From the NCBI RefSeq assembly GCF_964194025.1, contig NW_027449238.1, positions 1-54,385 on the forward strand: a stretch of 54,385 bases of DNA, read 5' to 3'. The number at the start of each line of letters is the position of its first letter. The first letter of the stretch is position 1. Shown piece after piece: positions 1,433 through 43,400 of this stretch. The position numbers and the translations under genes were made by a program. The notes beneath the pieces were generated by a model. The model was given only the letters and a program-made list of their open reading frames with translations. It had not been told where the DNA came from and ran no database searches. This stretch comes from Convolutriloba macropyga. Lineage: Eukaryota.

Positions 1433-1465
1433 TCTACTCTCTACTACGCTATACTTCTGACTACA

Positions 1466-19460: not shown

Positions 19461-19593
19461 CCGTTCGGGGAGCAGTCCCGTAGCCTGGCTGCTCCCCCGT
19501 ACGTTCTTTTAAGGCTACTAGGTACTACCCTGGTACTTAGGGCTGGGTGCTGATGTCTACATGTTCCCTGCCTAAATGCTCCTCCTCCTACTA

Positions 19594-22206: not shown

Positions 22207-25200
22207 ATGGCCGAGACCGTGAAGGTGCCGACGTTTTCGGGCAAGGCCGCCGACTTCCCTGTCTTCCGAACCAAGTTCACTGCTTACGCCGACGCTCTGG
22301 GGCTCGGAGGTGTGTTGGACTGCGAGGACGACGTCACCACGGCCCAGCAGAAGCGGCTCTACAGCCTGCTGGTCCTGGCCCTGCCTGAAGCTGCCCTCCA
22401 TGTCATCCGCAAGGTCGAACGCAAGTCTGTCACTGCTGGCAACGATGCGTGGGAGGCCCTGCTGCACCGCTACGAGCATGACGGCATCCACCGGCGCGGT
22501 GACCTGCTGAACGCCCTGGATGAGAAGCAGCGCCCCGAGGAGACCTGCATGGACTTCTTCAACCGCCTCGTGGATCTTCAGGCTCAACTTGGGCGAGTTG
22601 ATGAGGAGGTGCCAGATCGCCGCCTGGTGATGAACATCATCCGAGGTCTGCGCCCCGAATATGCCGCCATGACCGACACCATCAACGAGAGAGACTCTGC
22701 GGTGACAGTGGAGTTCATGGAGACCCTGCTGGCTACCACTGGACAGCGCATCGAGCGCCGCCTGGGTGAGCAACGCGAGCCTAAGCCTGCTGCTACAGCG
22801 TTTCCTGCGTCTGGTGAGGAGCCCGAGGATCTGCGGAGCATGATGCAGAAGCTGAAGCAGGAGGTGGCAGCTCTGACAACCTCCAGACGCCGCAACGGGG
22901 GAGGCATGGAGTTCAAGGGCGCCTGCTGGCACTGCGGCGAGTCTGGACACCGTCGCAAGGACTGCCCCAAGAAGAGCGCTCCCAGCGCCAATGCTGCGGA
23001 CCTGGAGGACTCCAAGGCTGTGGCGTTTCCTTCAGTGGCTCTGTCTGGCACGGGCTCCAAGTTGGCTTCACTGGTGCAGGGCGAGGTGGAGACCTGGATG
23101 TGGCTGGTGGTCAGTGGCGCCAGTCATCACATGACCAGCGTACGCGAGGACTTCGTCGAGTTCCGACCCATTCCACAGCAGTGGGTGAAGGGCATCAGCG
23201 CCTATGCTACAGGCATGGGATCTGTTCGACTTACGATGCGAGCCGAAGATGGGCAGGTGGTTCCTGCTATGCTGCACGACGTCTACTTCGTGCCGGACCT
23301 GGCGGCGAGAGCGATGAGCAGTCACCACCGCCTCTTCAGCGTCACTCAGGCCAGGCAGCGCGGCCATCGGATGGTGTTCGAGGACCCGTGTGATGTGCTG
23401 TGTGTGCATGAGAGACACGGAGGGGGCATTCGAGTGCCACTGCGGCGTGACTTCGGGCTGGTGTGGCTGGCTGCTGGCATGACCACCCGCGGTGCCGCCG
23501 TCTCGGCCTGTCCTGCAGCAGCCCCGCCAAGTAAGCCCCTCTGGCACCTTCGGCTTGGTCATCTGAGCGAGTCGTGCATGGACCGGATGCGGCGCGCTGG
23601 AGCTACTGGCCTGACCTTCGATGCTTCGGAGCGGTTGTGCTTCTGCGAGTCGTGTGCCGTCTGCAAGTCCCGAGTGAAGGCCATTCCGCGGGAGCCGTGC
23701 GCAGATCCGGAGCGTGTCTTCCAGCAGGTTGGCGTGGACTTCTGCGGGCCGATGACTGTGCCAGCGCTAGGAGGCGGGCGGTACAGCTTCTTGGTGACGG
23801 ACTTCAAGTCGCGCATGCTGCTGCATGATGTTCTGCGGACCAAGGACGAGGCGCCGAGATCCTTCCGAGGTGTTCTGGACGCTGTGCGCAAGCTTGGGCA
23901 CAGAGTGGGGCATGTTCGCCTGGACAATGACAGCGTGCTGCTGGGGACCGACTTCATGACGGTGCTGCAGGAGCATGACATCACCCATGACCTCATCGCG
24001 CCGTACTCACACTGGCAGCACGGCCGAGTGGAGCGTCAGTGGGGCACCTTGGTGCCGATGGCCCTGGCGATGCTGCACACTGCAGGCCTGGAGAAGTGCT
24101 TCTGGGGCCTGGCCATGAATGCCGCCGTCCACATGCGCAACCGATCTTGGAGCGAGGCCGCTGGAGGACCGCCGCTTGAACTCGTGACCAAGTGCCCAGT
24201 GGATCTCAGCCGTCTGCGTGTCTTCGGGTGCCCTGCATATGTCCACATCGACAAGTCTCGTCGGCGCAAGCTGGACGACCGCGCGTGGAAAGGCATCTTT
24301 GTGGGCTATGCTGCAGACTCGCCGGTGTGGCTGGTGTACAACCCGCGAACTCGGCGAGTGGAGCGCAGCCGCAACTTGGACTTCGATGAGATGGCGCTGA
24401 TGGGATCCGTCAGCGTGGGGGAGAAAGCGCCGTCTGCTAAGGACGATGACGGAGTCCCAGTGTTCTTCGAGGAGCCTAGGGAGCGCTCTGGCGGCGACAC
24501 CGATTCGGGGGAGCCAACTTCGCCTTCATCTGCCTCGGGGGAGCCAAGTCAGGCACTACAGGAGTCGGGGGAGCCAAGTCAGCCTGCTGGTGAGCTCCGC
24601 CGCAGCTCGCGCGCCAGACAGCCGCCGACTGAGTGGTGGATCAGCCAGCCTGCTGTCAACCTTGCTGCTGCTGCCGGAGCCGTCCCTCATCAGGAGCCGG
24701 CCTCGTACAAGCAAGCGCTGCGGAGCCCGCAGGCTGATCAGTGGAAGGCTGCCATGGAGACTGAGTACGACGCGCTGACGTCGCGCAAGACTTGGCGACT
24801 GGTTCCCCGACCTGCAGGACGCAAGCTGGTGGACTCCAAGTGGGTCTACAAGCTGAAGCGCAACCCTGACGGCAGTATCGCCAGGTACAAGGCTCGGCTT
24901 GTGGCCCGTGGCTTCACCCAGGAGCACGGCGTGGACTACCAGGAGACCTTTGCCCCCACGGTGAAGGTGGCGGCCATCCGAATCATCCTGGCGTTGGCGG
25001 CACACTTCGACTGGGATGTGGAGCAGATGGACGTGGTGACAGCCTTCCTGGAGGCCGACATCGCCGAGGACATCTACATGAGGCAGCCTGAGGGATACCG
25101 CCAAGTGGACCAGCATAGCGAGGAGCTGGTGTGCAAGGTGTTGAAGTCCATCTACGGGCTGAAGCAGGCTCCACGCAACTGGAACAAGACTGTGTCGGCG

Positions 25201-26132
25201 TGGTTGGTGGAGTATGGCTTCAAGCAGTCGACTGTGGACCCGTGGATCTACACCTTCGCTGCTGGTGGAGACCTCTACATCCTGGCTCTGTATGTGGACG
25301 ACAGCATCATGGCGGGACCGCCAGGCAGCTTCATCTCCGACTTCAAGCGGGCGTTTGGCAAGCGCTTCAACGTGCAAGACCTGGGGCCGGTGTCTTGGCT
25401 ACTGGGCATGACCGTGGAGCGTGACCGAGCAGCTGGAGTCCTCAAGGTGGGGCAGCGTCAGTACATCCTCGACATGCTGGAGCGCTTCAACATGTCGGAC
25501 TGCAAGCCCGTCAGCACTCCCATGACTGTGGGTGCTCTGAGTGAGGCAACTGCCAGTGAAGTGCTGTCCCCAGATGTGCCGTATCAGAGTCTCATCGGGA
25601 GTCTGCTCTACGCATCAGTCAGCACCAGGCCAGACATCACCATGGCCGTCAGCCATCTCAGCCGGTACATGGCTTGTCCTTCCACTGTACACTGGGAGCA
25701 AGCCAAGCGAGTGCTTCGGTACCTGCAGGGCACTCTAGACTGGCAGCTGGTGTATGGAGCCGATGAGTCCACGGCGACCTTGACAGGCTACTCAGATGCT
25801 GACTTCGCTGGAGATGCAGACGGACGACGCTCTCGCACCGCCTTCGTGTTCCTGCTGAATGGCGCGGCGGTCAGCTGGAAAAGTCAGCGGCAACCCACAG
25901 TGGCGCTCTCCACTGCCGAGGCGGAGTACATGGCTCTGACGGCTGCAACTCAAGAGGCTGTGTTTCTGAGGCAGCTGTTGCAGGAGATGGGGCAGCCTCC
26001 AGCATCTGGCACACTCATCCACGAGGACAACCAGAGCTGCATTGCCCTCTGCAAGAACACCATGACCACTGGCAGGAGCAAGCACATCGAGGTGAAGATG
26101 CACTTCTGTCGTGAGAAGCAGGAGAGCGGCGA
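22207..26132 (+). pseudogene. Copia Gag-Pol of copy 3: protease DSG changed to VSG, and RNase H tail separated by the insertion (remainder 35910-36024)
   Basis: WLVVSGAS; ...KQESG then transposon then EIVVDYCP...GSSE stop. Confidence 0.93.
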
Positions 26133-26331
26133 CACGACAAATCAGAATTCCAAAAATAGTACATTTAAGAACCCCAAAATTGCTCAGACGCCACCCACCC
26201 TCCTGTGTCCAAATGATGTCCAATTGGCATCCTGAAAATTTTGTCCAGAAGCTGAACATGTTAGCTTGGACACTGTGTAATTTGATTTCAAATCCCCTAC
26301 GTCTGTTGACTGCGACCGGTCAATTTCCGAG

Positions 26332-29300
26332 ATGTGCAATCGCACGATCAATTGCGATGTGCAATCGATCACATCATCAACACCACTCACCGAACACCAA
26401 TTGTCGATCATCATGCCGACTCGAACGAGGACTCCAGACGAAGAATGTGAATCTCCACCGCCTATGCCTGCTGTCGATGCACGGCGGGCCGAAATCTGGG
26501 TGTACGCCAAGAACATCCGTGCTGGATGGGCCCGCACGCATGCGTTGATGGGCCATCAACGCGTCACAATTGCGACACGCGATGACAGCATCTCCGCGTT
26601 GGCCAGGCAGCTTCATGACTTGAAAATGGAGGTGGAATCTGTTAAGCAGACACGGAGGAGTGACCTCGCAGCTGCGCGCACGGAGAGGAACCGACTGCGG
26701 CGTCAATTGGAGGCCGCGAAACAGCTTGCCGACGAGTCGTCGGGTCGCCGCACCGGCCAGCTCCTCGCCAACGCTCGCGAGCAGATCTCTCGATTAGAGA
26801 CCGACCTCGAGGCAGCTAAAGAACAGGCCGACACTGTCTTGAGGGAAACTCGGAGCCAGTTGCGTGGAGAGCGGGATGAGGCAGTACGGCAGCTTGTTGA
26901 GGCGAAGGAGGCAGCCCGCCGAGCCGAGGCGTCGGAGGCCAGCTTGCGAGCTTGGCACAATCTGGATGGGCGGAACCGACCCAGAGCTGGCCCTGCAGCA
27001 GATTCCAGCTCTCAAAGCGTCTACAGATGCAATGCCAGGCTGGTAGAGGACCTGAGGCAATTCATGGACGAGAAATTCGAAGGTGGTCATGAGGGGGAGG
27101 TCGCTCGCATGGCAGTGGTGGCATACCTGAAATCCAAGCCTGGTATAGCCTCATGTGTTGTCTCACAGCTCGGACTCAGGGAGCAGGTGCAGGCAGAGTT
27201 CATATCCATCCTGAAGGAGCATTACAACGTCGAAAACTGTGCAGCTCTTTTCATGCACGGCAATCTAACGCATGCGGGCTACCAGGCTATCTCGAACCTG
27301 ATGGCTGGTGTGTGGGACAGCGTGGACGAGAAGTTTGTTAGATTGATGGCGCCTGATGGGAAGACACCTATCCCTCGCATGGCGTCTCTGCATGTGCTGC
27401 TGGATTACTTCAAGAAGTGTGCAGAGGAGTTTGGTGTGGAGTCTCTGCACGAGGGACAAGGAGGAGCGCTGAATATCCAGAGGGTTCTGCAGTCTCAGGT
27501 GGAGTACTTACTGAAGGACGCCGAGCCGGAGAGTATCCCTCAGCAGATCCCTGTCCAGTTCGCCGCTGACTCAGCAGGCTGGAGTAAGAAGCCGACCGAC
27601 AAGATCATGAAGAACTTCACAGCTCTTGTGGTCAGGCCGATCCTAGGGAAGGCAGGCAGGAGCGACAGGGTGGGGGACACTGTCAACAGCTGTCACAACA
27701 ACAGGCTAGCCGCTCTGTACGCCGGGAGTGACAGCCATCACCTGATGCACAAGTTCCTCAACACCAGCAACACCTCGTCAGGGCAGATGGTGCTCACCTT
27801 GAGGCAGCAGATGGAGCAGCTCGCAGCCAACAGCCTGCACACATCTCAGGGTGTCATAGGAGTGCTGTGGAGACTTGGCGGTGACCTTAAGTTCTTGGTG
27901 GAGTCCATGGGGATTAGCAGCAATGCTGCCACCTACCCCTGCCATCAGTGCACCTGCCACAAGGACCACATGTGGAGGCTGCCTGAGGACTTTCCCTTGG
28001 CAGAGGTGCCACAGCCTCGAACCTACCAATGGATGCTGAAAATGGCCCATGCTTTCGGAGAGGAGGTAGGCATCACTGAGCCGTACGTCTGCCCAGGCTG
28101 CAACAGGGAAATATCAGCAGAGCAGCGGCACCAACCTGTGACTCGAGAGGAGCTGCGGCAGTATGGCTTGGACAATTTCTCCCATGTTTGGGGGAAGCTA
28201 CCACTGACTGCCATCGAGCCAGAGGATGCAGTCCCTGATGGGTTGCATGGCTTCCTGAGGACTGTTGAAGTATGTGAGTGTGTGTGTGACAAATCAAGAT
28301 GGTTTACACAATTTCAGCACTCGCTTATATTGAGTATCCTACTTAGCCTACAGGCTCTTGACTTGCAGTTTCACTGACAGACACTCCTGACCATCCGATG
28401 TAGATCGTACGGTCTCTAATACTGCTAATAATCTCACCATCTCCGGAGATTGCAGTATTCGCCCTACAGTACTTTAGTCAGAGTGATTAGCGACATGTAA
28501 ACGTACCCTACTGGTACGAGTACACACGTACAACTACTCACAACGCAGCACACATGCATATCGGTACCGTACTGTATGGTACGTACGAGTATCGTACCCT
28601 ACAAGCACCGCATCTGCAAAATAGTACGAGTACCAGTACAGATCAGTACAACACAATGCTGTACCCATACAGTACCTGTACTCGTCCTGCACGACACTCC
28701 CCCTCGCTACTCACTCGAGCCCATCACGCTCCTGAACAGCTTCTTGTGCCTCTCTCCAGCCAGCGGCTTGCTCAGACCATCAGCCAACATCTCCTCAGTC
28801 GGGCAGTAGTCAACCACGATCTCGCCGCTCTCCTGCTTCTCACGACAGAAGTGCATCTTCACCTCGATGTGCTTGCTCCTGCCAGTGGTCATGGTGTTCT
28901 TGCAGAGGGCAATGCAGCTCTGGTTGTCCTCGTGGATGAGTGTGCCAGATGCCGGAGGCTGCCCCATCTCCTGCAACAGCTGCCTCAGAAACACAGCCTC
29001 TTGAGTTGCAGCCGTCAGAGCCATGTACTCCGCCTCGGCAGTGGAGAGCGCCACTGTGGGTTGTCGCTGACTTTTCCAGCTGACCGCCGCGCCATTCAGC
29101 AGGAACACAAAGGCGGTGCGAGAGCGTCGTCCGTCTGCATCTCCAGCGAAGTCAGCATCTGAGTAGCCTGTCAAGGTCGCCGTGGACTCACCGGCTCCAT
29201 ACACCAGCTGCCAGTCCAGAGTGCCCTGCAGGTACCGAAGCACTCGCTTGGCTTGCTCCCAGTGTACAGTGGAAGGACGGGCCATGTACCGGCTGAGATG

Positions 29301-32300
29301 GCTGACGGCCATGGTGATGTCTGGCCTGGTGCTGACAGATGCGTAGAGCAGACTCCCGATGAGACTCTGATACGGCACATCTGGGGACAGCACTTCACTG
29401 GCAGTTGCCTCACTCAGAGCACCCACGGTCATGGGAGTGCTGACGGGCTTGCAGTCCGACATGTTGAAGCGCTCCAGCATGTCGAGGATGTACTGACGCT
29501 GCCCCACCTTGAGGACTCCAGCTGCTCGGTCACGCTCCACAGTCATGCCCAGTAGCCAAGACACCGGCCCCAGGTCTTGCACGTTGAAGCGCTTGCCAAA
29601 CGCCCGCTTGAAGTCGGAGATGAAGCTGCCTGGCGGTCCCGCCATGATGCTGTCGTCCACATACAGAGCCAGGATGTAGAGGTCTCCAGCAGCAGCGAAG
29701 GTGTAGATGCACGGGTCCACAGTCGACTGCTTGAAGCCATACTCCACCAACCACGCCGACACAGTCTTGTTCCAGTTGCGTGGAGCCTGCTTCAGCCCGT
29801 AGATGGACTTCAACACCTTGCACACCAGCTCGTCGCCATGCTGGTCCACTTGGCGGTATCCCTCAGGCTGCCTCATGTAGATGTCCTCGGCGATGTCGGC
29901 CTCCAGGAAGGCTGTCACCACGTCCATCTGCTCCACATCCCAGTCGAAGTGCGCTGCCAACGCCAGTATGATTCGGATGGCCGCCACCTTCACCGTGGGG
30001 GCGAAGGTCTCCTGGTAGTCCACGCCGTGCTCCTGGGTAAAGCCACGGGCCACAAGCCGAGCCTTGTACCTGGCGATACTGCCGTCAGGGTTGCGCTTCA
30101 GCTTGTAGACCCACTTGGAGTCCACCAGCTTGCGTCCTGCAGGTCGGGGTACCAGTCTCCAAGTCTTGCGTGACGTCAGCGCGTCGTACTCAGTCTCCAT
30201 GGCAGCCTTCCACTGCTCAGCCTGCGGGCTCCGCAGCGCTTGCTTGTACGAGGCCGGCTCCTGATGAGGGACGGCTCCGGCAGCAGCAGCAAGGTTGACA
30301 GCAGGCTGGCTGATCCACCACTCAGTCGGCGGCTGTCTGGCGCGCGAGCTGCGGCGGAGCTCAACAGCAGGCTGACTTGGCTCCCCCGACTCCTGTACTG
30401 CCTGACTCGGCTCCCCCGAGGCAGATGAAGGCGAAGTTGGCTCCCCCGAAGTGGTGTCGCCGCCAGAGCGCTCCACAGGCTCCTCGAAGAACACTGGGAC
30501 TCCGTCATCGTCCTTAGCAGACGGCGCTTTCTCCCCCACGCTGACGGATCCCATCAGCGCCATCTCATCGAAGTCCACGTTGCGGCTGCGCTCCACTCGC
30601 CGAGTTCGCGGGTTGTACACCAGCCACACCGGCGAGTCTGTAGCATAGCCCACAAAGATGCCTCTCCACGCGCGGTCGTCCAGCTTGCGCCGACGAGACT
30701 TGTCGATGTGGACATATGCAGGGCACCCGAAGACACGCAGACGACTGAGATCCACTGGGCACTTGGTAACGATTTCAAGCGGCGGTCCTCCAGCGGCCTC
30801 GCTCCACGATCGGTTGCGCATGTGGACGGCGGCATTCATGGCCAGGCCCCAGAAGCACTTCTCCAGGCCTGCAGTGTGCAGCATCGCCAGGGCCATCGGC
30901 ACCAAGGTGCCCCACTGCCGCTCAACACGGCCGTGCTGCCAGTGTGAGTACGGCGCGATGAGGTCATGGGTGATGTCATGCTCTTGCAGCACCGTCATGA
31001 AGTCGGTCCCCAGCAGCACGCTGTCATTGTCCAGGCGAACATGCTCCACTCTGTGCCCAAGCTTGCGCACAGCGTCCAGAACACCTCGGAAGGATCTCGG
31101 CGCCTCGTCCTTGGTCCGCAGAACATCATGCAGCAGCATGCGCGACTTGAAGTCCGTCACCAAGAAGCTGTACCGCCCGCCTCCTAGCGCTGGCACAGTC
31201 ATCGGCCCGCAGAAGTCCACGCCAACCTGCTGGAAGACACGTTCCGGATCTGCGCACGGCTCCCGCGGAATGGCCTTCACTCGGGACTTGCAGACGGCAC
31301 ATGACTCGCAGAAGCACAACCGCTCCGAAGCATCGAAGGTCAGGCCAGTAGCTCCAGCGCGCCGCATCCGGTCCATGCAAGACTCACTCAGATGACCAAG
31401 CCGAAGGTGCCAGAGGGGCTTGCTTGGCGGGGCTGCTGCAGGACAGGCCGAGACGTCGGCACTGCGGGTGGTCATGCCAGCAGCCAGCCACACCAGCCCG
31501 AAGTCACGCCGCAGTGGCACTCGAATGCCGCCTCCATGTCTCTCATGCACACACAGCACATCACACGGATCTTCGAACACCATCCGATGGCCGCGCTGCC
31601 TGGCCTGGGTGACGCTGAAGAGGCGGTGGTGACTGCTCATTGCTCTCGCCGCCAGGTCCGGCACGAAGTAGACGTCGTGCAGCATAGCAGGAACTACCTC
31701 CCCATCTTCGGCTCGCATCGTCAGTCGGACAGATCCCATGCCTGTAGCATAGGCGCTGATGCCCTTCACCCACTGCTGTGGAATGGGTCGGAACTCGACG
31801 AAGTCCTCGCGTACGCTGGTCATGTGATGACTGGCGCCACTGTCCACCAGCCACATCCAGGTCTCCACCTCGCCCTGCACCAGTGAAGCCACCTTGGAGC
31901 CCGTGCCAGACAGAGCCACTGAAGGAAACGCCACAGCCTTGGAGTCCTCCAGGTCCGCAGCATTGGCGCTGGGAGTGCTCTTCTTGGGGCAGTCCTTGCG
32001 ACGGTGTCCAGACTCGCCGCAGTGCCAGCAGGTGCCCTTGAACTCACTGCCTCCCCCGTTGCGGCGTCTGGAGGTTGTCAGAGCTGCCACCTCCTGCTTC
32101 AGCTTCTGCATCATGCTCCGCAGATCCTCGGGCTCCTCACCAGACGCAGGAAACGCTGTAGCAGCAGGCTTAGGCTCGCGTTGCTCACCCAGGCGGCGCT
32201 CGATGCGCTGTCCAGTGGTAGCCAGCAGGGTCTCCATGAACTCCACTGTCACCGCAGAGTCTCTCTCGTTGATGGTGTCGGTCATGGCGGCATATTCGGG

Positions 32301-34552
32301 GCGCAGACCTCGGATGATGTTCATCACCAGGCGGCGATCTGGCACCTCCTCATCGACTCGCCCAAGCTGTGCCTGAAGATCCACGAGGCGGTTGAAGAAG
32401 TCCATGCAGGTCTCCTCGGGGCGCTGCTTCTCATCCAGGGCGTTCAGCAGGTCACCGCGCCGGTGGATGCCGTCATGCTCGTAGCGGTGCAGCAGGGCCT
32501 CCCACGCATCGTTGCCAGCAGTGACAGACTTGCGTTCGACCTTGCGGATGACATGGAGGGCAGCTTCAGGCAGGGCCAGGACCAGCAGGCTGTAGAGCCG
32601 CTTCTGCTGGGCCGTGGTGACGTCGTCCTCGCAGTCCAACACACCTCCGAGCCCCAGAGCGTCGGCGTAAGCAGTGAACTTGGTTCGGAAGACAGGAAAG
32701 TCGGCGGCCTTGCCCGAAAACGTCGGCACCTTCACGGTCTCGGCCATGATGTCGCGAGGAGAATCAGGCAGACGAAACAAGATCGGTCGATAGGTCGAAG
32801 AGCAGCAGACAGGCACCGAAACACGTGCAGGTACTCGCGGTCACGGACAGTAGCGCCACTGCCAACAGGCCGAACAACAGCAACAGGAACGCCACTCGGA
32901 AAGACGTCTCCACGCTCGACAGGGCCGACAAGGCAGGGTTCGCGCACAGATCGGCAGGCACTCGACACACAGCACCGCCCAGAAACACAGGGAGACGAGT
33001 AACCACAGACAGCAGGTCTCGTGCTCGTCGCCACTCCTTGCCCAGCTGCACAACTCGCAGCACTTGCAAGAAAACACTCGATCTCGATCTCGAAGTCGAC
33101 AGCTCCACACACTCGTAGTCGAAGCTCTCCACAGGAAGATACGTCTGAAGAAGAAGGCTCGAAGGAAGGAAGTCAGGAAGTCTCGAAGCCTCGAAGCCTC
33201 GAAGTCAGGAAGTCTCGAAGTCAGGAAGTCTCCAAGAAGTCTCGCTGTAGTCAGAAGTATAGCGTAGTAGAGAGTAGAGGGCCCATAACCTGTTGAAGTA
33301 TGTGAGTGTGTGTGTGACAAATCAAGATGGTTTACACAATTTCAGCACTCGCTTATATTGAGTATCCTACTTAGCCTACAGGCTCTTGACTTGCAGTTTC
33401 ACTGACAGACACTCCTGACCATCCGATGTAGATCGTACGGTCTCTAATACTGCTAATAATCTCACCATCTCCGGAGATTGCAGTATTCGCCCTACAGTAC
33501 TTTAGTCAGAGTGATTAGCGACATGTAAACGTACCCTACTGGTACGAGTACACACGTACAACTACTCACAACGCAGCACACATGCATATCGGTACCGTAC
33601 TGTATGGTACGTACGAGTATCGTACCCTACAAGCACCGCATCTGCAAAATAGTACGAGTACCAGTACAGATCAGTACAACACAATGCTGTACCCATACAG
33701 TACCTGTACTCGTCCTGCACGACAAGGACAGCCATCAATATGTTCTTCGTGGGCATCTCGATGAATCTGCACAGCCTGGAGCGAGCAGAGGAGGTCTGTC
33801 AACTGATGCGGGAGCTGGTGCAGGTGGAGGCAGATCCAGTTTTTAGCCAGAGGAGCAGGGAGGCTACAAGGAAGCAGGTTCAGAGCTGGAATGGGAAGGA
33901 GTGTTGGAGAGTGCTAGCAAGCATTGGGACCATTATGGATGAGACCTTCAAGGGCCGGGCAGCAGGCGCCGATGCAACCCCAGCTGAGCGGCAGGCTGAG
34001 GAAGGCTACAACCTGGTCTCCAGCATGTTCAGCAGCTTTGTGGAGCTGATGGCAGCCTGGATGCTAGACGTGTCACAGGAACATTGGCAGCAGGTGGCAC
34101 AGCTACTGCGGGAGAAGGCGAAGAAGTTTAGAGATGCCTTTGTGATGGCTGCTGGTAGTACAGTAGACTGCACCCCCACCATGCACTCTATTCTTTACCA
34201 CTACCCCCACATGTATGCACGGCATGGACCCATCATGAGGTATTCCATGCAAGGACTAGAGGCGAAGCACCAGCCCATCAAGAGGGCTAGGAGAGGGCAC
34301 TGCAATCAGAAGTCTTTTACACATCTAGGAAGAAACAATGCTCGGGGGTTCACGACTGTGCATTCTGTCTCTACCGACATCATGCAAGTTACTAGGCGCA
34401 TGACCGCCCGGGACTACATTATGACCATCGTTCCCACAGGCAAGGGCACTAAGAAGAGGGCTAGGTCTGAGCTGCAAACTGATCCGCTGTCAGCTGTTAT
34501 TAGGCAGCTGCAGCAGGACTACCAGCTTGACCTTCAGGGCGGGCAGGCATAG
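26332..34552 (+). CDS. RAG1/Transib/Chapaev-type DDE transposase, ~917 aa when 26332-28257 is joined to 33725-34552; disrupted here by copia copy 4
   Basis: Join is in frame (LHGFL-RTAINMFF); motifs FAADSAG, GGDLKFL..MG, YPCHQC, PDGLH, WNGKEC, TPTMHSILYHYP, YSMQGLEAKH; N-terminal coiled coil; true start codon uncertain. Confidence 0.88.
28263..33724 (-). mobile_element. Full-length copia copy 4 (5,462 bp); LTRs 33291-33724 and 28263-28696; 5-bp TSD AGGAC
   Basis: aggac at 28258-28262 and 33725-33729; LTRs appear identical. Confidence 0.98.
28707..32747 (-). CDS. Copia Gag-Pol polyprotein, intact
   Basis: Translation matches copy 2. Confidence 0.97.
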   Translation of the reverse strand: MAETVKVPTFSGKAADFPVFRTKFTAYADALGLGGVLDCEDDVTTAQQKRLYSLLVLALPEAALHVIRKVERKSVTAGNDAWEALLHRYEHDGIHRRGDLLNALDEKQRPEETCMDFFNRLVDLQAQLGRVDEEVPDRRLVMNIIRGLRPEYAAMTDTINERDSAVTVEFMETLLATTGQRIERRLGEQREPKPAATAFPASGEEPEDLRSMMQKLKQEVAALTTSRRRNGGGSEFKGTCWHCGESGHRRKDCPKKSTPSANAADLEDSKAVAFPSVALSGTGSKVASLVQGEVETWMWLVDSGASHHMTSVREDFVEFRPIPQQWVKGISAYATGMGSVRLTMRAEDGEVVPAMLHDVYFVPDLAARAMSSHHRLFSVTQARQRGHRMVFEDPCDVLCVHERHGGGIRVPLRRDFGLVWLAAGMTTRSADVSACPAAAPPSKPLWHLRLGHLSESCMDRMRRAGATGLTFDASERLCFCESCAVCKSRVKAIPREPCADPERVFQQVGVDFCGPMTVPALGGGRYSFLVTDFKSRMLLHDVLRTKDEAPRSFRGVLDAVRKLGHRVEHVRLDNDSVLLGTDFMTVLQEHDITHDLIAPYSHWQHGRVERQWGTLVPMALAMLHTAGLEKCFWGLAMNAAVHMRNRSWSEAAGGPPLEIVTKCPVDLSRLRVFGCPAYVHIDKSRRRKLDDRAWRGIFVGYATDSPVWLVYNPRTRRVERSRNVDFDEMALMGSVSVGEKAPSAKDDDGVPVFFEEPVERSGGDTTSGEPTSPSSASGEPSQAVQESGEPSQPAVELRRSSRARQPPTEWWISQPAVNLAAAAGAVPHQEPASYKQALRSPQAEQWKAAMETEYDALTSRKTWRLVPRPAGRKLVDSKWVYKLKRNPDGSIARYKARLVARGFTQEHGVDYQETFAPTVKVAAIRIILALAAHFDWDVEQMDVVTAFLEADIAEDIYMRQPEGYRQVDQHGDELVCKVLKSIYGLKQAPRNWNKTVSAWLVEYGFKQSTVDPCIYTFAAAGDLYILALYVDDSIMAGPPGSFISDFKRAFGKRFNVQDLGPVSWLLGMTVERDRAAGVLKVGQRQYILDMLERFNMSDCKPVSTPMTVGALSEATASEVLSPDVPYQSLIGSLLYASVSTRPDITMAVSHLSRYMARPSTVHWEQAKRVLRYLQGTLDWQLVYGAGESTATLTGYSDADFAGDADGRRSRTAFVFLLNGAAVSWKSQRQPTVALSTAEAEYMALTAATQEAVFLRQLLQEMGQPPASGTLIHEDNQSCIALCKNTMTTGRSKHIEVKMHFCREKQESGEIVVDYCPTEEMLADGLSKPLAGERHKKLFRSVMGSSE

Positions 34553-34670
34553 GAACTTTGTAATGCAATGCAGACTGGCCGGCACTAGTGCAGGCCGGCC
34601 GGCATGGGAGCCGGCGAATGCATGAAGTGAATGCAAGGCAGTGCCCGGCGTTGTAAATGAATATTATATA

Positions 34671-35411
34671 TTACACCATTCGCTGCACTAACATACCATC
34701 AAGGCCGCTCATTGGTGGCCCGTTCTCAAACGAAGCTATCACTCGATCCCAAACATACTGCTTGGGATCTACATAAGCTGTGTTTACTGGCCAATGCTTT
34801 CGAACTGTTACATCGCTGGGATAGTCAGCGCTAAACCCGATCATCCTCTGCATCGCATGAATGGGAGTAACAATGCATAGGTTGAATGTTATCTTTACTC
34901 TCTCTTCTTGCACTCCCCCATACGATTCAGTCCTGTGAGTGACTTTGAGAGGGGGTGCAACTAGGCCTAGGGAACCACTAGAGTAAGCAAACATGTTACC
35001 CCGCACTCGAGCGACGGGCCCCTGCCCGCTTCGGCTAGCTGGAACATGGAAGCTGCATAGCTGACCGATCGCTCTCCAGTCTGTGCACATGTAGTCGTTG
35101 AAGGTGACCGCTCCCCTGCGCCTCTGGCCAGTCAGCTGCCAGTCCGCTGACTCCGCCAGTCCCAAGGCTGACGTGAGCTGTGGCAAGCTAACGTTCTTGA
35201 CCGTGCAGTTCAGGAAGCTGACTGGCCTTTGCACCTTTATCCTGTCATATATGGTCCGAGAAATGCTCCCTCTGCAATCATTTCTGACTAAAACGACGGG
35301 CTGTGGGGTTTCTAGCTGATGGCAGAAGAAGCAGGGCCGAGCCAGCGTGGCATCTTGGACGCCCTGAAAAGCACAAGTGGCACAGAAGAGGCGAGAATGG
35401 CCTGAAGCCAT
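34671..35411 (-). CDS. Second, convergent gene of the DNA transposon (~246 aa, N-terminal CxxC..CxxC), function unknown
   Basis: Open frame MASGHSRLFCATC..RPCFFCH..; candidate 5' UTR intron (donor aag/gtgagt ~35792, acceptor ttgttttcag ~35425); lies inside the TIRs. Confidence 0.65.
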   Translation of the reverse strand: MASGHSRLFCATCAFQGVQDATLARPCFFCHQLETPQPVVLVRNDCRGSISRTIYDRIKVQRPVSFLNCTVKNVSLPQLTSALGLAESADWQLTGQRRRGAVTFNDYMCTDWRAIGQLCSFHVPASRSGQGPVARVRGNMFAYSSGSLGLVAPPLKVTHRTESYGGVQEERVKITFNLCIVTPIHAMQRMIGFSADYPSDVTVRKHWPVNTAYVDPKQYVWDRVIASFENGPPMSGLDGMLVQRMV

Positions 35412-38271
35412 AGCATACCCCCACCTGAAAACAAAACAATGGCTCAGTAACGGCACACGGCGTCATGATGACCGCTATACTATGCCTTCATATGGTCATA
35501 TACTACAAGTCTGCGGCGGGGTTCGCACAGATTTTCGTTGTGTCGAGAACAATTCCGGATCTCCCAGATGTGACTGGGTTGGCAGATCTGTTTGTAATGG
35601 TTGCAAGCGGCTATGTTCGGTTACGAGCTCGGAGCCAACAGCAGCAACCGCTAGGTCGAACGGCCAGCCACCCGGTATACAGTGAGTCAATGATGTATAT
35701 AAACCACTCGCGAAGTGGTGTGCGTGCTGGTGCGCGGTGGCGCCGGAACCCGAGCCGGTAGATCTGGTGGGTGCTGGTCGATGGCGACTCACCTTTCAAC
35801 CGCTTTTTGAGCGCGTGAAACACGCCTGTGCGAACAGGGGTTGTGGTCCGCGGGGCCCCCTGATACGTTCTTAAATGTACAGGCCCGGCCTGCCCTGATT
35901 TGTCGTGGAGATCGTGGTTGACTACTGCCCGACTGAGGAGATGTTGGCTGATGGTCTGAGCAAGCCGCTGGCTGGAGAGAGGCACAAGAAGCTGTTCAGG
36001 AGCGTGATGGGCTCGAGTGAGTAGCGAGGGGGAGTGTCGTGCAGGACGAGTACAGGTACTGTATGGGTACTGCATTGTGTTGTACTGATCTGTACTGGTA
36101 CTCGTACTAAATTGCAGATGCGGTGCTTTCAGGGTACGATACTCGTACGTACCATACAGTACGGTACCGATATGCATGTGTGCTGCGTTGTGAGTAGTTG
36201 TACGTGTGTACTCGTACCAGTAGGGTACGATTACATGTCGCTAATCACTCTGAGTAAAGTACTGTAGGGTGAATACTGCAATCTCCGGAGATGGTGAGAT
36301 TATTAGCAGTATTAGAGACCGTACGATCTACATCGGACGGTCAGGAGTATCTGTCATTGAAACTGCAAGTCAAGAGCCTGTAGGCCAAGTAGGATACTCA
36401 ATATAAGCGAGTGCTGAAATTGTGTAAACTATCTTGATTTGTCACACACACACTCACATACTTCAACAATGTGGCCAGGGACTCGTACGACCCTTCGGTG
36501 GAGGCTTCGGCGTCCTGGTTGCCGGATGTCGTCTGACAGTCTGTCGGTTGGATACCGAGGCTTTAGAGGCGCTCCGCTGGTGGCACGGTCGCATGGTTCT
36601 GGTGGTCGACCCCGGCGGATATTCTGGGGCGAGGAGACCCGTGGCTGTCTATGGGGACCCGCCGTGTTGCAGCACTTGCCACGCGATGACCAAGTGGAGC
36701 AGCTGGATGGCCAGATAGCGATGATTACAAATGACGCCAGTGGTTGGGCAGGTGGTGCCTGGTGGGGGCAGCGCCGACTGCACTATGCCTTCACGGACGC
36801 CCAGCTGGCCGGCTTATGCGGTGGTCTGCCAACCTCCGCGAGCTGTACGTGCCCCCCTTCACAGTCGAGAAGTGGCAGCCCCGGGGGGTCCGGGTCCTGT
36901 TTCGCATGGATTCTGCCGCGTCAGTGGGGGCTATCAGTCGCCGGGGTTCTATCTATGGTGCCCCACTTTAACGCCCTGGTGCTACAGCTGATGGAACTGC
37001 TGGAGAATTTTGGGCTCGGAGGCTGTTTTCGCCACTTGCCAGGCAAGGAGAATGTCCTGTCTGATGGTATCTCTCGCCTGTCTGGCAATCCGGAACACGG
37101 ACCCCTCCGATTGGATGCTGTCTTCAGCAGTATTCCACGCCCTACGGAATCTATACGGGCCGTTTGAGGTGGATGCGTGCTGCGAGGCTTTGGGCAACAA
37201 CTCCCTCTGCTCGGTGTTTTGATCGGCCTTGGACTCTGCTCTGACGAGGTCATGGGCTGTGTGGGAAGGTGATTTGGTGCTACTCCCCCGATTAGGGAGG
37301 CGTAGGCACTTCTGGCAGAGCTCCTGCGAGGCACCTGAGAGCACTTCAGCCGTGTTTCTGCTTCCAGTGTGGCCCACTGCCGGGTGGTGGCGGTTTGTCT
37401 GGGGCGGCAGGGTTGCAGCCTACTACCCTGCTGGGGCCCGTCTGTTCTCTCGGCCAGATTGGTCCCCTGCCTCACGTCGACATCCGCTCACTACGACTCG
37501 GATCAGTGAGCACTAACTGGGTTGTGGTGGCTGGGTTCTTCGCCTCTGCTCTCAGCAGGCTGGACGGGCTGCCGTGGTACTCAGCGCTGCCCAGCCTGCG
37601 CGGCGTCGATGCCCCGGATATTCTTTTCTTGCGCGGGATACCCTCTGGTCTTGTGCCCGTCGTGCGCCGCCCGACCACCTCCTGTTCATCCTGAGCTCTT
37701 CGTTTGTGTGGAGTGCGCGTTGAGGGGTGTGAGGCTTCCAGTAGCTGGCGCTGGCTCGGCTTCCCAGCAGGCAGAGCGGGTAAGATTGGTCCCATGGGGC
37801 TGACTCCTTGGCGTCGGCTCGCCACCGTGTATCCACCCGGGGAGGGTATAACCGGACTGTGTGGCCGACTTCGTGGACTTCTGCCGGGCTCGTGGTGTGG
37901 AGCCTCTGCCGGAAGCGGTGAGGGCTTATGTATGTCACTGTACCGCCGACAGGGGGCTGGATGCACAGACTGTGGAGGGCCGCATGTCTGCGCTTGGGGA
38001 CTGGCATGGTCGCCAGTCGAGTGCCTTGGTGCGCGTGGGGCCGCCAGCTTCGGGGAACCACTGCAGGACAGCGCCGGTTACGGAGCTGCTAGCGGTGGTG
38101 CGGAGGACGGGCAGGACCGGCCACTGGGGGTGGCTTCATCTTACTCGGTCCGAGTTCAGGGGGATGTGCGCCTTTGGCTTCGACCTGTCCAAAGCATCTG
38201 GTCATCACCGTCGTCTCATCAGCACGCTGGGCTGTGCGAGGCGCAAGGCGGCGGTGAGCCTGCGAGTGTCC

Positions 38272-38354
38272 TAGTAGGAGTAAAATCCTGGCACACGCCA
38301 GTGACAGATTGGGGCATACAAGGGGCATCAAAACTTTCGCTTATATAGCCCACA
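38272..38354 (-). mobile_element. 83-bp non-LTR 3'-end remnant with CTA tail and 12-bp TSD CTGCGAGTGTCC, inside the YR gene
   Basis: Direct repeats at 38260-38271 and 38355-38366; insert is similar to 40103-40167. Confidence 0.78.
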
Positions 38355-38954
38355 CTGCGAGTGTCCCATTATACTATTTCGGGCAGTATCATATCTTTTT
38401 CTTCTTCTTCCGGTGTGTACATCACTTATGATCGGGAGACCCAGATGGAATACATTGGCCTGAGCGTCAACGTGGATAAGAATGAGGACTCCAGCATGCA
38501 GGCACATGCTTACATTCCGGCGGCAGTGCCGGTGCTGGGTGTGCGGCCTGTTGACCTATTGCGGGATTACCTGCTTCGGTTCAGGCCTCCCTCTAGCGGC
38601 TACCTGCTGGCAGCCCCTCGGACCCAGGGCCTCGGTTCGGCCACCTTCCACCCAGGGTTGTATACCTGCTTGGGCCGGGCCTACCGGACGGCGTACTTGC
38701 GGGCCTTTCCTGATGAGCACACGGTCTGCCGACATGTCCCGTCTGTCTGCTCACTCGGGCCGCAGATCCCTTTCACAGTTGTTGTGGGACGCTTACCAGT
38801 CTATCCGCCGGATTGAGGAAAGATGTTGGCCACTGGCGGTGTGCGAAGGATGCCGTTCATTTGTACTTCAAGTCTACGCCTTCAACAATCCTGCGCTGCG
38901 TTGCAGCCCTGTGACCTTCGCCTTCGGCTCCGGCAAGTTCGTGTGGAGTGACAT

Positions 38955-39515
38955 GGGAGATCACAAAGGGCATCCTCATCCTCCAGTGACTCTGCGCTGC
39001 AGGGACTTGCCACCCATGTAAGACGAAGCCCAGAGTCAAGCAAAAGCGAGGTGTTGCCGTAGGACGCAGTCTCGTAGCAACTCCAGTTTTTGCAAGGCTT
39101 GACATGCGAGAAGAGCGGGAGCGGCCAACAAGGGACTCTGCGAGAATATTTGAAATGTTTAGAACACTCAGGAGATATGACATATTTAGGATGTTCAGGA
39201 TACTTGAGATATTTAGAATATTCAGAATATTCCTCGCAGGATAGGTCAAGGTAGCGCTTGCGTAGGGCAGGCGAGGTTGTTGGTTAGGTAGGGTTTTTCC
39301 GGGTGGCACTTGTGCTACCACTGTAGCAAGAGTGCCGGCTGTTGTTGATATAGGGCAGCTGGCGGCTAGAGGTTGGCTAGAGAGCCTTCAGTTTCTTTCT
39401 GTGTCCCCGCCCTCCCGCCCTCTAGCATTCCGGGAGATCACAAAGGGCAGCCTCATCGATTCTGCGCGGCAGGGACTTGCCACCCATGTAAGATGAAGCC
39501 CAGAGTCAAGCAAAA
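38955..39515 (+). repeat. Split direct repeat terminus B1 (38955-39045) - A (39046-39431) - B2 (39432-39515); A contains degenerate 9-bp tandem repeats
   Basis: gggagatcacaaagggc...gcccagagtcaagcaaaa occurs twice; atattyag-type 9-mers at ~39143-39231. Confidence 0.85.
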
Positions 39516-39725
39516 CCTCACTCTGTAGCGAGAGCCCCTATCGCACGGTCCGCAACCTAGCGCTCGCCCAGCTGCAAGCTAGTATAATGTGGCACTGCCC
39601 TAGTATAATGTGGTTAGTAGGTACCTGCAAGGCAACGGTGTCCGGGACAAGGGAAGTAGACCGTTGGGTGGGTGTGGGGGGCGAGAGCTATCAAGACTGC
39701 AGCATTATGTATGTAGACATCGTAG

Positions 39726-40298
39726 TTTTGCTTGCCTCTAGGCTTCGACTCACATGGGTGGTAGGTCGCCGCCATGCAAAATCACTGGGGGTTGCCAGAT
39801 GAGGCTGCCCTTTGTGATCTCCCAGAATGCTAGATCGAGGGCAGGAGGGCATGGAAAGAAACTGAAGGCCCTCTAGCCAGCCGCCAGCTGCCCTATATCA
39901 TCTGCAGCTGGCACTCTTGCCACAGTGGTGACACAAGTCCCACTTGATAACCTGGAAAAACCCTACATAACCATCGACCTGGCCTACCCTAGCTAAGCCC
40001 TACATTGACCTAAACACCTACTCTGCGGGGACTATTCTGAATATTTTAAGTATCGCAAGTATCCTGAATATCATAGGAATGTCAAATATTTTGAGTGTTC
40101 TAGTAGTAGTAGTAAAATGCCTGGCAGCCGCCAGAGATACATGAGGGACATCAAAGCTATCGTTATCTGAGTCTTCTAAATATTTCAAATATACTCGCAT
40201 ATCCCGTGCTGACCGCTCCCGCTCTTCTCGCCTGTCAACTGTCAAGCCTTACAAAAACTGGAGTTGCTACCGGAAAACGTCCTACAACAGCACCGCGC
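39726..40298 (-). repeat. Inverted, diverged solo A-B unit of the same YR-element family
   Basis: Reverse complement aligns with 39046-39515 (B at 39726-39823, A at 39824-40298). Confidence 0.85.
40103..40167 (-). mobile_element. ~65-bp non-LTR 3'-end remnant with (CTA)n tail and ~11-bp TSD (tgagtgttcta / tgagtcttcta)
   Basis: Absent from the A repeat at ~39150-39180; flanking repeats at 40092-40102 and 40168-40178. Confidence 0.78.
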
Positions 40299-40499
40299 AT
40301 TGTGCATCTCTTGCGGTTGCGGCCAGGCATTTTACTGCTATTACTATGCTATAACGTGGAATGTGCTGGTGGAATATCCTTCAAGGTGTTTGATAGCGGC
40401 CGATGTCACCGCCAGGACTCAAGTGACACTCTCTGGCTGTTCTGGTCAGGTGTAAGCAATTCATATTCACAACAGGACGGCTTCTCAGCCGGGACAGAG

Positions 40500-43400
40500 A
40501 TGCAGTGTCCATGCAGGCTATCAGTTTTGCATTGGATGATGCCACTCAATTTCCCATACCACGGGTGCATTGGTCTCTCCCAGCCTGTTTAGAGAGATTG
40601 GAGTCAGAGTGGGTGTGCATACCGAGACAGTTCTTGACTAATTCGGGATGAAGGTTGTCTCCCAGTTCAGCCGACAATGTCTGAAGGCACTCTCCGAGAC
40701 TTATCGTTTCGCCTACCCTGGAACATTCCCTTACGTACCATCATCGAGTTGCTCTTTCTTGGAATGTGGTGGCCCTACCTATCTGCTGGCTGTTGTTTGC
40801 AATTGGAGTTGAAGAATATGAGCAGCCCTTTTCAGGAGCCTGGATCCACCCCTCTGCACCGGTCAGGGTCAAGCGCGCAGTTGTGGTTTTCCATCAACAC
40901 GAGTCAGGAATTCCGTAGTTCAGCGTGTCTTCAGTCTCCACCTGGTTCTGATGTATGGTGCGTGATACTAGTTGACCGAGTCAGGAATTGGCCTGACCTC
41001 TTCTGCCTTGTCACAGTATCCAAGTACGAAAGAACTGCGTGCTTGCTGCTATTCTTCCTTGCCTCATCAAACGGAGTTTCATTCCATCTATCCCTATCAT
41101 GTGCACAGAGAGCGGAATTCTGAGGAATTACAGGCTTGTCCCACTGCCGCAATGTCCTCCCCACAGCATATAATATATCACATTGGTTCCGCAGCAAGTA
41201 GACATGGTGAGTGCCGACGGTGCCTCTTACCTTAGATTCTCGTCTGCTCCATACTGCATCAACAGTTTGACCAACGGTAACAATCCTTCCGCACATGCTA
41301 TGTGTAGGGCGGTGCGGCGGTCGTAGTCGCCAAGAGAAGGATCAGCGCCGTGTTCCAGGTACAACTTCAAGAGGTCAGCCTTTCCCCTGGATGGATGTAG
41401 CAGCAATGCATGTCAGACAAAAGTCAATAGGTTTGGCTTGACCCTCCAGTCTCATCCAGGCACAGACAGCACCTCACGTTGCTGAGAGGAGAGGCGCTGT
41501 TCACCTGTAAACAACATTGCACAGGACAGATCCAGCGTCTTCCAGGCAGAGGTCAGCGCCATACTGTCTCAAGAGCGCGGCGGCATCTGAGTTCAAACTC
41601 TTCACGGCATCATGTAGCGGGGTGCCGCCCATGATATCCTGCAAAGCAACAGGCAATCATGCAGTCAACTTCCGCCTTGGGCCACCAACATTCTGGGGGT
41701 CAGAACAAGCATGAACCTCAGGAAACTACAACAAGTATAAGTGCAACCATCTGGTACGTACTCTTTCCAGTTCCAAGGACGGCAAAACAAGTTATAGCTG
41801 GAGAAAAGCCGAACCGTGGGGTAAGGGGAGGATCACGTCACCTTGACATTCACGTCTGCTCCTTTTTCAAGGATAAGGAATCGGAGAACTTCGAGGCGTC
41901 CGTTTGCGGCCGCCACATGCAACGGTCGGCGTCCATCGTAGTCCCCCCTGTTATGTGTGATGTGGCCAGGATCAGTGAGTGACTTACGGATGCTGCTGTA
42001 GAGACGCTGCAATCCGACATGTGCTGACCCGTGTGCGTTGAGTTGGGGGAGTTACATATTGATGTCGTGCTGCGGGTCGGACTGGAGAATGTATTTCAGC
42101 TGCCGTACATTGCCACTGGAGCAGGCGTAGCACAGCTTGGTCACCAGGTCTGTTTTCATTGCTGTGACAAATGCCATGACCTGTACAGAACCCAATCGAT
42201 CATATGAACTGACAGCAAGCATTCACAAATCGTTTTGCACTGCCATTCGAAGCTCAACCACAAACACTTCTGGCGCCGAGCAGAGAAGTGCAAGTACCTT
42301 TGAGATCCTAGTCTCCACGTCAGGCGCTTCTGCGGCATCCAGTTTCCTCAGGATCTGCTCAAGGTTGAAACAGCAAATCCTGTGATCCATCTTGTTGCGC
42401 TTGCATGCATCTTGCATGGCCGCGACCGGGATCACCAGCATCTTCACAAGGGTTTCGGACCAGTAGGAAAACGCCTGCATGCCCAGCAACCGAAACGTGC
42501 ATCACAACAACTCCTCCCATACGTTTCAAGCTCGCAGACAGTGCTGACAACGTGCAGATCGATGGGTAGTGCAGTCCAAGGGGAACAGCTGAAGAATAGC
42601 CAGCTCCATGCAAACGCCAGCGGCTGTCTTTACCACCGGCAGGTCGCAGAGAACAGTCTCCTCGCCAAACACGGCGCCTTCTGATTGACATCTCAGGCGG
42701 TGTCCGTCGGCATTGTACACAGCCACAGTGCCTGACAATACGAAATACAGGTGAGGTGATCGCTCTCCTGCGTGCACTATTGGTGAGTGGCAGTGAACGA
42801 ACTCCGAGTGAGCGGTCTGTGAAATGCTGTCGATAAAGGAGTCTGAGACGCCCTGCACGCAGCATTGGAATCGCACACAAAAACAGCATACAGTTGATTT
42901 TCGAGCCAAAACCGTTTGGCGGGTAGCCCCAAGGCTGTAGCGTTGTTTTTGAAGCAAAGCTGCAATGTGAAACAGGGCTCGCTCCCCCGCAGCCATCTGC
43001 ATCTATGCAGGATGCGGCGCCATCTTTCCAGTGACGCATGGTTCTGTCCACGAAACGCCTGACCGAAATTAAGACAGGTGATGCAGGAATGATTTCTGGC
43101 TTCGAGGGCCATCAGAACCGTGGAGTTTCCTATCCGCGTCGCCCCACAAACAAGACACCTCCGGCTGCACGCCCCTCCATCTCTCATGCTGACAGAGGGA
43201 CCAAACATCGTGTGCGCTCCAGTGGATTCAAAAGGATACCACTACATGCTAGCGCCAGAGAGGCCAAGCCTCGGAAATCACCGACCGTACGCAACAAAAC
43301 GGAGCCAACAAATGGTGTGGGCCGTGCCTCCGGGTCGATTGATCCTGTAGCAAGTAATGGTGTCTAGACAGAGAGGCAGGGAGAGACCAGGGCAGAGCCC

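Follow-up and report, generated by a model that had tools for sequence, protein, structure and literature searches.

Introduction

Interest in RAG1-fold transposases comes from their place as ancestors of V(D)J recombination and from the question of how such enzymes recruited their partner proteins. The locus described here raises this question again: within a 54,385-bp contig deposited with the Convolutriloba macropyga assembly (GCF_964194025.1, contig NW_027449238.1, positions 1 to 54,385 of the forward strand; this whole stretch is called the window), positions 26133-35907 hold an element that encodes a RAG1-like transposase and, convergent with it on the opposite strand, a second gene, open reading frame 2 (ORF2). 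Is this a real transposon, to which family does it belong, and is ORF2 part of it? To our knowledge, the only RAG1-fold transposases with solved structures are RAG, ProtoRAG and one Transib.

Our analysis leads to the conclusion that the element is very probably an autonomous cut-and-paste DNA transposon of the CMCT clade, from a rare green-algal branch of that clade; the transposon is real, and it has probably kept its function. The CMCT clade comprises EnSpm, Mirage, Chapaev, Transib and others, and its hallmarks are a C2C and an H3-4H motif, CA..TG termini and target-site duplications (TSDs) of 2-5 bp (PMC12730594). RAG1-likeness is thus a property of the whole clade and not peculiar to the window element; any member would be expected to resemble RAG1 and to have a short TSD, and the distinctive feature is the ORF2 partner gene.

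Results

Insertion site and intact allele

The element has precisely defined ends. Its terminal inverted repeat (TIR), CACGACAAATCAG, is found at two places in the window and no others, 26133-26145 on the plus strand and 35895-35907 on the minus strand, as an exact 13-bp inverted match; the chance expectation is 0.07, and two matches were found in 0 of 100 shuffles. A subterminal motif, GTACATTTAAGAAC, lies 13 bp inward of the 5' TIR (26159-26172, plus strand), and its inverted partner, the same motif in minus-strand reading, lies 14 bp inward of the 3' TIR (35867-35880).

The insertion itself can be read from the neighbouring repeats. Self-BLAST showed four copies of one copia-type long terminal repeat (LTR) retrotransposon in the window, with polyproteins that carry gag, integrase (rve) and RVT_2 domains according to Pfam. 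Copy 1 (987-6448) and copy 2 (9621-15082) are uninterrupted, and copy 3 (21222-36468) is interrupted by the transposon. Copy 3 is broken at 26132/35908 with a 2-bp overlap relative to its sister copies: against copy 1 it aligns to 987-5889 and then to 5888-6448, the two segments sharing two bases. The empty site in copies 1 and 2 reads GCGGCGA/GATCG, and the filled site in copy 3 reads GCGGCGA/CACGAC...GTCGTG/GAGATCG. This comparison of empty and filled sites shows that the transposon inserted into copia and that GA was duplicated, leaving the left copy at 26131-26132 and the right copy at 35908-35909. The initial annotation had proposed both the exact TIRs and a GA duplication recognizable from sister copia copies, and both proposals held.

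The transposase gene of the window is split by a foreign insertion. Copia copy 4 (28263-33724, minus strand), recognized by its Pfam domains, its LTRs and its absence from the allele described below, is nested within the transposon and interrupts the transposase in codon 600 (numbering of P0001, the intact protein introduced below); its LTRs are 100% identical, and it is flanked by a 5-bp TSD, AGGAC, at 28258-28262 and 33725-33729. Without copy 4 the element measures 4308 bp. The N-terminal part of the transposase (26332-28262, plus strand) was delimited from the list of open reading frames, the mapping of P0001 and a 25-sequence alignment; deleting 28263-33729 fuses it in frame with the C-terminal part (33730-34552, plus strand, stop codon TAG at 34550-34552) into 917 codons and a stop, just as had been predicted from the sequence at first reading. 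Indeed, this configuration exists in nature: ENA contig ERZ25071359:ctg24702 (L015) is 100% identical to window positions 16464-28262 and then to 33725-44551, and it is the same locus without copy 4, a natural intact allele. Gene calls on L015 give an intact 873-aa transposase, P0001, which the gene caller starts at the ATG at 26464, and after it a gene of 246 aa in the reverse orientation.

A transposase of RAG1/Transib architecture

The transposase is a DDE enzyme of RAG1/Transib architecture. Its RNase-H-like domain, with the catalytic residues D369, D474 and E777, follows a long coiled coil and is split by a zinc module that C493/C496 and H752/H757 make up. The coiled coil, D369 (27568-27570), D474, C493 and C496 lie on the N-terminal part, and a WNGK motif, H752, H757 and E777 (34259-34261) on the C-terminal part.

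The sequence family is small. The transposase reached zero Pfam families, even at an E-value of 10, and phmmer, run exhaustively over 1.8 billion protein representatives, returned 86 relatives. When a set of 5.8 billion proteins was searched with a profile, all matches were members of the family, and a scan of metagenome loci gave no relatives. In an alignment of 25 sequences, the columns of D369, which sits within an AADS motif, and of C493 are invariant, those of G473, D474 and C496 are nearly so, and the consensus runs ADA, GGDLKF, PCxxC, CPxC, DxLH, WxGxxC, HxxxxH and SxQGxExxHQ. When the 25-member profile was searched against PDB sequences, mouse RAG1 was matched at E = 5.6e-6 and amphioxus RAG1L at 0.019; HzTransib was not matched in these sequences at E <= 10. 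The hidden Markov model (HMM) alignment pairs GG.DLKF...PCxxC with GTGYDEKL...YICTLC of RAG1 (D708, C727, C730), NGkeC with MNGNF, and yMHvivvHlP...GsL..ysSqGlE with YFHKTLAHVP...GSI..WASEGNE (H937, H942, E962). The spacings are equal in both proteins: the two cysteines follow the second aspartate at +19 and +22, and the glutamate follows the first histidine at +25. Of the seven RAG1 motifs that the initial annotation had listed, five thus stand in this alignment, namely GDLK/YDEK, YPCHQC/YICTLC, WNGK/MNGN, TMHSILYHYP/YFHKTLAHVP and SMQGLE/SEGNE; AADS/CDG and DGLH/DALH were not aligned there.

The predicted structure gives the same picture. An AlphaFold model of the transposase (predicted local distance difference test, pLDDT, 79.9; predicted template modelling score, pTM, 0.70) finds RAG1 chains in the top 37 rows of a Foldseek search (E = 1e-12), and VIA-align superimposes model residues 249-841 on RAG1 459-1007 with a Z-score of 22.5 and a root-mean-square deviation of 3.7 A over 466 residues. 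HzTransib (Foldseek E = 2e-10, VIA-align Z 20.3) and BbRAG1L, the amphioxus ProtoRAG protein (7e-8, Z 19.8), follow, and the next fold is the P element transposase (1e-4, Z 11.0). Together with the profile match, this bears out the initial proposal of a RAG1-like transposase. Residues 40-165 of the model form the long coiled coil, and the alignment with RAG1 starts only at residue 249; a counterpart of the RAG1 nonamer-binding domain (NBD) is not established. The ranking needs care in one respect. No CMC transposase structures are among the PDB matches of the transposase; because they are missing there, a first rank of RAG1 is expected for any CMCT member.

Searches of larger structure collections mostly led to unnamed proteins. 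The AFDB and ESM Atlas structure matches are uncharacterised proteins of 9-18% identity from cnidarians, amphioxus, rotifers, Rhizophagus, Naegleria, Klebsormidium and C. elegans. The ESM Atlas structure search listed unnamed Streptophyta and Cnidaria clusters, and its annotated clusters were DUF1280, RAG1_RNase_H (arthropod and vertebrate RAG1) and Transposase_21, at similar TM-scores.

A conserved convergent second gene

ORF2 lies on the minus strand at 34671-35411 and encodes 246 aa from the ATG at 35411; the open frame spans 34671-35456, with 261 aa if read from a GTG. Its claimed partnership with the transposase was confirmed by linkage elsewhere. Homologous ORF2 genes stand tail-to-tail with the transposase in four elements of the same assembly (contigs C1304, C4396, C1367 and C895) and in L016, L017, L018, L019 (two elements) and L020, and weak profile hits in L021 and L022 bring the total to 12 further elements. 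By BLASTP or HMM, the similarity ranges from 69% identity down to weak profile matches, and for Cymbomonas the evidence for an ORF2 is marginal. A set of 5.8 billion clusters contains three ORF2 entries: besides ORF2 there are two relatives, 69% and 65% identical to it, and a related transposase lies on the contig of one of them.

The two genes have also diverged together. Identities of ORF2 and transposase run in parallel (69/69, 57/64, 41/46 and 38/46%), and between ORF2 and its L016 homologue pN is 0.19 and pS 0.70; in both genes pN is far below pS, with a dN/dS of about 0.1 that is rough since dS is saturated. ORF2 is under purifying selection, and it is an obligatory co-inherited companion of the transposase lineage.

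Chance would be the simplest alternative, with ORF2 a random antisense frame or a captured host fragment that has no transposon function; the DNA is GC-rich (53-57%) and full of spurious ORFs, and ORF2 has no known domain and a low Atlas recognition score, but this reading is hardly credible, as 12 other elements, with transposases that share only about 20-70% identity with the one in the window, carry the gene at the same place and in the same direction, the window and C1304 ORF2 proteins are 40% identical where DNA similarity is undetectable, and profile matches reach the most distant members. A non-functional chance ORF is in practice refuted by the conservation in 12 elements and the purifying selection.

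What the ORF2 protein looks like is less clear. Its alignment shows an N-terminal CxxC...CxxC pattern followed by a conserved G...PP core in an alpha/beta domain. No Pfam model matched it, Transposase_24/TnpA included. The predicted model is of moderate quality (pLDDT 68.7), and it found nothing above background in PDB or AFDB; the best Z-score of an exhaustive VIA scan was 6.6. A WRKY/GCM1-like DNA-binding fold was considered and set aside, the matches being at background level (WRKY33 Z 5.3, AFT2 Z 5.1, AFDB FAR1 E 0.02). No match to a Kelch propeller or PHD fold was found. ORF2 is not RAG2-like, and the parallel with ProtoRAG drawn in the initial annotation holds for the arrangement of two tail-to-tail genes and not for the identity of the second one. 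When the transposase core and ORF2 were predicted as a complex, the score was 0.00, which counts neither for nor against binding; the fold of ORF2 itself is uncertain.

The intergenic region is compact. The sequence TGTAA, a polyadenylation signal in chlorophytes, occurs 7 nt past the transposase stop (window 34559) and overlaps the ORF2 stop (34671) on the other strand. The gap between the two genes is only 118 bp, so that the transcripts may run into each other or end in a common bidirectional terminator region.

Bipartite ends and a 2-bp duplication across the family

The ends of the element are bipartite: a terminal CAC repeat of the form CAC(G/A)(A/T/C)CAAATC, a spacer that is not conserved, and a conserved motif, GTACAYTTAAGAAC. 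The spacer, 13 and 14 bp long in the window, is A/T-rich on the side of the transposase and GGCCGGCC-rich on that of ORF2, and a spacer asymmetry of the 12/23 type is absent. GTACAYTTAAGAAC is present at both ends of the window element, L016, L017 and L019B and at one end of L014, the C1304 element; its core TTAAGAAC is kept at both ends of L016, L017 and L019B and at the 3' end of L014, and in L018 both the motif and its core have diverged. More distant subfamilies end differently, L020, L042 and L019A with CAC(C/A)(A/G)CGTTCC, and L022 and L040 with CACGGCACAC.

These distant subfamilies were found without TTAAGAAC (L020 544-600, L022 55-110, L042 2657-2700). Just inward of their TIRs they carry repeated (C)GTAC(C/G) words. 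Such repeats would fit subterminal binding sites that co-vary with ORF2.

Eleven elements have credible termini; the TIR candidate of the C1367 element (L041) is at chance level, and it was excluded from the tally. An exact 2-bp TSD flanks 6 of the 11: GA in the window element, AA in L017, GA in L019B, GA in L019A, AC in L040 and TA in L042 (binomial P = 2e-5; an offset control gave 0 matches). Repeats of 3-5 bp were found in none of the 11. Those further copies that have a TSD agree with the length proposed from the window copy, and none shows a longer one. L019B (4275 bp, 610-4884, TSD GA) is nested in L019A (397-9353, TIR CACAGCGTTCC, TSD GA); this is a second documented insertion event in the family, and its members insert into each other.

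Host and activity

The window contig probably comes from a green-algal cobiont and not from the main organism of the assembly. The assembly comprises 1.18 Gb in 4694 contigs; its large chromosomes (68-89 Mb) have a GC content of 33-37%, and the 54-kb window contig and all contigs with the transposon family have 52-57%. Among 20 clusters of relatives that were looked up, the only named members are a transcript of Pterosperma sp. CCMP1384 and the Cymbomonas tetramitiformis protein KAK3250216.1, both from prasinophyte green algae; the remaining clusters are metagenomic.

Perfect TIRs, two intact genes and an insertion that postdates copia copy 3 (LTRs 96.5% identical) suggest that the window element was active recently. 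Apart from one chance match, a search for non-autonomous copies with a pattern of TIR plus subterminal motif returned nothing but the window and C1304 elements. The C1304 sister element (L014 2229-4937) is a decaying copy, with its transposase split over at least three frames and its ORF2 (263 aa) intact. In a small sequencing run of another organism, guessed to be RNA, two pieces of 153 and 167 nt matched at 95-99% identity.

A Logan contig of 4393 nt, seen in two samples, carries the element free of copia. After 35905 it reads GGCAACGTCGTACGACTAAGATCGTACGA; these 29 nt do not match the window flank and are missing from the assembly. This alternative right flank may be a second insertion site or an artefact of the assembly graph.

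The copia family of the window has its own history. Copy 4 is an insertion polymorphism, missing at L015 11795-11799 in a locus that is otherwise 100% identical. Copies 1, 2 and 4 are 99.9% identical to one another, and the family has therefore moved very recently. Directly upstream of copy 1 lies a partial copia fragment (72-986) that matches the complete copies at their 5' ends with 94-95% identity; it represents either a truncated copy of greater age or a remnant resembling a solo LTR.

Discussion

Placement within the CMCT clade

The family lies inside the CMCT clade and outside each of its model-defined sub-families that we tested. The clade motif is present as D369, D474, C493-x2-C496, H752-x4-H757 and E777; 10 elements of 11 have CAC...GTG termini, the exception being L018 with ...GTA at its 3' end, and the 2-bp TSD is that of the six elements above. 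A TSD of this length has precedent in the clade, where TSDs of 2-5 bp are already known (Kojima).

By language-model features, the nearest named family is Chapaev: in the ESM Atlas, Chapaev/DUF1280 scores 0.95 (208 of 256 features) and the RAG1 clusters 0.87. DUF1280 corresponds to Chapaev and clusters beside RAG1 (Majorek et al., PMC3985635). The profile evidence for this likeness is partial. Sub-threshold matches to DUF1280 (PF06918) occur in 7 of the 25 family members, the best at 23.2 bits against a cut-off of 25 and covering only the last 36 profile positions (183-218), and the window transposase itself has zero match. Searching the genome with PF06918 yielded a single decayed remnant, located on one of the main chromosomes. 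Chapaev elements duplicate 3-4 bp, whereas the window element duplicates 2 bp, and we know of no conserved second gene in Chapaev.

Like CACTA/EnSpm elements, the window element ends in CAC, has a TSD in the 2-3 bp range, encodes two proteins and carries conserved motifs just inward of its ends; in CACTA, TnpA binds such motifs. However, CACTA genes are co-oriented and spliced from one transcript, whereas the window element has two intronless convergent genes. PF02992 (Transposase_21, EnSpm) did not match the window transposase or its 25 relatives, and intact EnSpm ORFs from the main chromosomes of the same assembly score just 21 bits with the family profile. Such EnSpm-type copies are numerous in the main genome (C8:39019338, C4:36410143, C2607:22359 and about 70 other places). 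With open frames of about 1000 aa, they form a different, apparently young CMC family.

Mirage has a TSD of 2 bp; its model DUF1258 (PF06869) matched neither the window protein at E <= 10 nor the 25 relatives at E <= 0.1. Two further CMCT lineages with 2-bp TSDs, ESTA and PlavakaA, are both fungal, and ESTA was recognised through its HHpred similarity to RAG1 (PMC12730594). The TSD of ESTA is strictly TA and the ends of PlavakaA are TGT..ACA, whereas the family described here has TSDs of GA, AA, AC and TA and termini of CAC..GTG.

Is the lineage already named?

It is possible, though we consider it doubtful, that the element belongs to a lineage that already has a name, either Lanisha of the moss Ceratodon purpureus (Repbase Reports 2020; GenBank MT647524) or an algal EnSpm or Chapaev family of Repbase. 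Lanisha is a proposed cut-and-paste superfamily of the green lineage with EnSpm-like character and CMCT motifs. The best structural neighbour in the ESM Atlas belongs to no named cluster, and its members of known origin are Streptophyta (TM 0.56/0.63), a Klebsormidium protein with 18% identity is among the AFDB matches, and 2-bp TSDs are found in PlavakaA, ESTA and Mirage. On the other hand, just 86 relatives were found among 1.8 billion representatives, land plants occur in 0 of the 20 clusters looked up, where the only named organisms are Pterosperma and Cymbomonas, and no Pfam family was reached. In addition, the literature we found, which does not cover the Lanisha description itself, reports no conserved convergent second gene in these lineages. 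The suggestion in the initial annotation of a possibly undescribed two-gene CMC/Transib lineage in a green-lineage genome fits these data, given the missing EnSpm, Mirage, Chapaev and RAG1 matches in Pfam, the rarity of relatives and the prasinophyte origin of the named ones.

Is it a ProtoRAG-type element?

A divergent Transib or ProtoRAG-type transposon, with ORF2 as a degenerate counterpart of RAG2, is unlikely. The likeness is considerable: no solved protein matches better than RAG1 in sequence or structure, the fold is shared from the DDBD/pre-RNH region through the C-terminal domain, the termini begin with CAC, two genes converge as in ProtoRAG, and the bipartite ends are reminiscent of a heptamer-spacer-nonamer arrangement. 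The TSD of the window element is 2 bp and that of Transib and RAG-like elements canonically 5 bp; Transib elements are themselves reported to vary in TSD length, 3-bp and TA duplications being among the cases (bioRxiv 10.64898/2026.08.26.747230).

Several observations oppose this reading. First, a leading rank of RAG1 is what any CMCT member would produce among PDB matches that hold no CMC structure, and at the sequence level HzTransib remains beyond E = 10. Second, the Atlas features place Chapaev/DUF1280 above RAG1; sequence identity to RAG1, RAG1L and Transib is 12-14%, the long N-terminal coiled coil stands in place of the N-terminal and NBD regions of RAG1, and the Pfam RAG1 models match neither the window transposase nor the 25 relatives. 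The RAG1 model PF12940 has no match in this genome, yet it has equally none in control genomes, so this silence carries little weight. Third, ORF2 has only 246 aa, with no match to a propeller, Kelch or PHD fold, and the 13- and 14-bp spacers lack the 12/23 asymmetry. We therefore favour the placement of the element as a green-algal CMCT transposon with a partner gene of its own.

Proposed mechanism

For this green-algal CMCT transposon we propose the following sequence of events. The transposase would pair the element ends, probably as a dimer, with the N-terminal coiled coil as a candidate dimerisation element. By analogy with RAG and Transib, the DNA would be nicked at the CAC termini, and the element would be released through hairpins on the flanking DNA. 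The 3'-OH ends of the element would then be joined to target phosphates 2 bp apart, giving the 2-bp stagger. ORF2 would be a transposition cofactor. Its most likely role is to bind DNA, with a zinc ribbon that recognises the subterminal motif by analogy with TnpA of CACTA elements; to a DNA-binding cofactor we give slightly less than an even chance. Alternatively, it may be a regulatory subunit, as RAG2 is for RAG1.

A number of points weigh against the interpretation given here. We infer the function of ORF2 entirely, its model is only moderate and has no fold relative above background, and the complex prediction is uninformative. The hairpin chemistry is extrapolated from RAG and Transib. 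Matching 2-bp flanks are missing in 5 of the 11 elements, namely C1304, L016, L018 (which has a mutated terminus), L020 and L022; the reason may be age, chimeric flanks in short-read metagenomes or misjudged ends. No empty sites were found for these elements; at C1304 the repetitive stretch of the left flank ends well before the junction, and the right flank has no second occurrence. Transposition events were not seen, the assembly contains a single copy of the element besides one diverged sister, and no sequencing run on record as RNA contains the element. Finally, the placement relative to Chapaev, Mirage, EnSpm, Transib and Lanisha is based on HMM thresholds and structure scores and not on a phylogeny.

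Significance

The CMCT clade is hereby documented in prasinophytes. If the element proves to be Lanisha or a catalogued Repbase family, the remaining value would be a well-annotated copy and the description of ORF2, and newness would be limited to the host. As a compact, intronless two-gene system with an intact natural allele, it would allow a direct test of whether a RAG1-fold enzyme depends on a partner unrelated to RAG2. A clade member with a 2-bp instead of a 5-bp stagger would also be useful for asking what determines active-site spacing, and the element is a possible transposon tool for green algae.

A bolder reading, which we put forward tentatively and expect to be wrong more readily than right, is that this is an unnamed green-algal branch of the CMCT clade at superfamily level, a two-component recombinase in which ORF2, with a new fold, would be required and would read the subterminal motif, and in which the L015 allele would be active with a 2-bp stagger. 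If this is true, the family would represent an independently evolved two-component recombinase of the RAG1 type.

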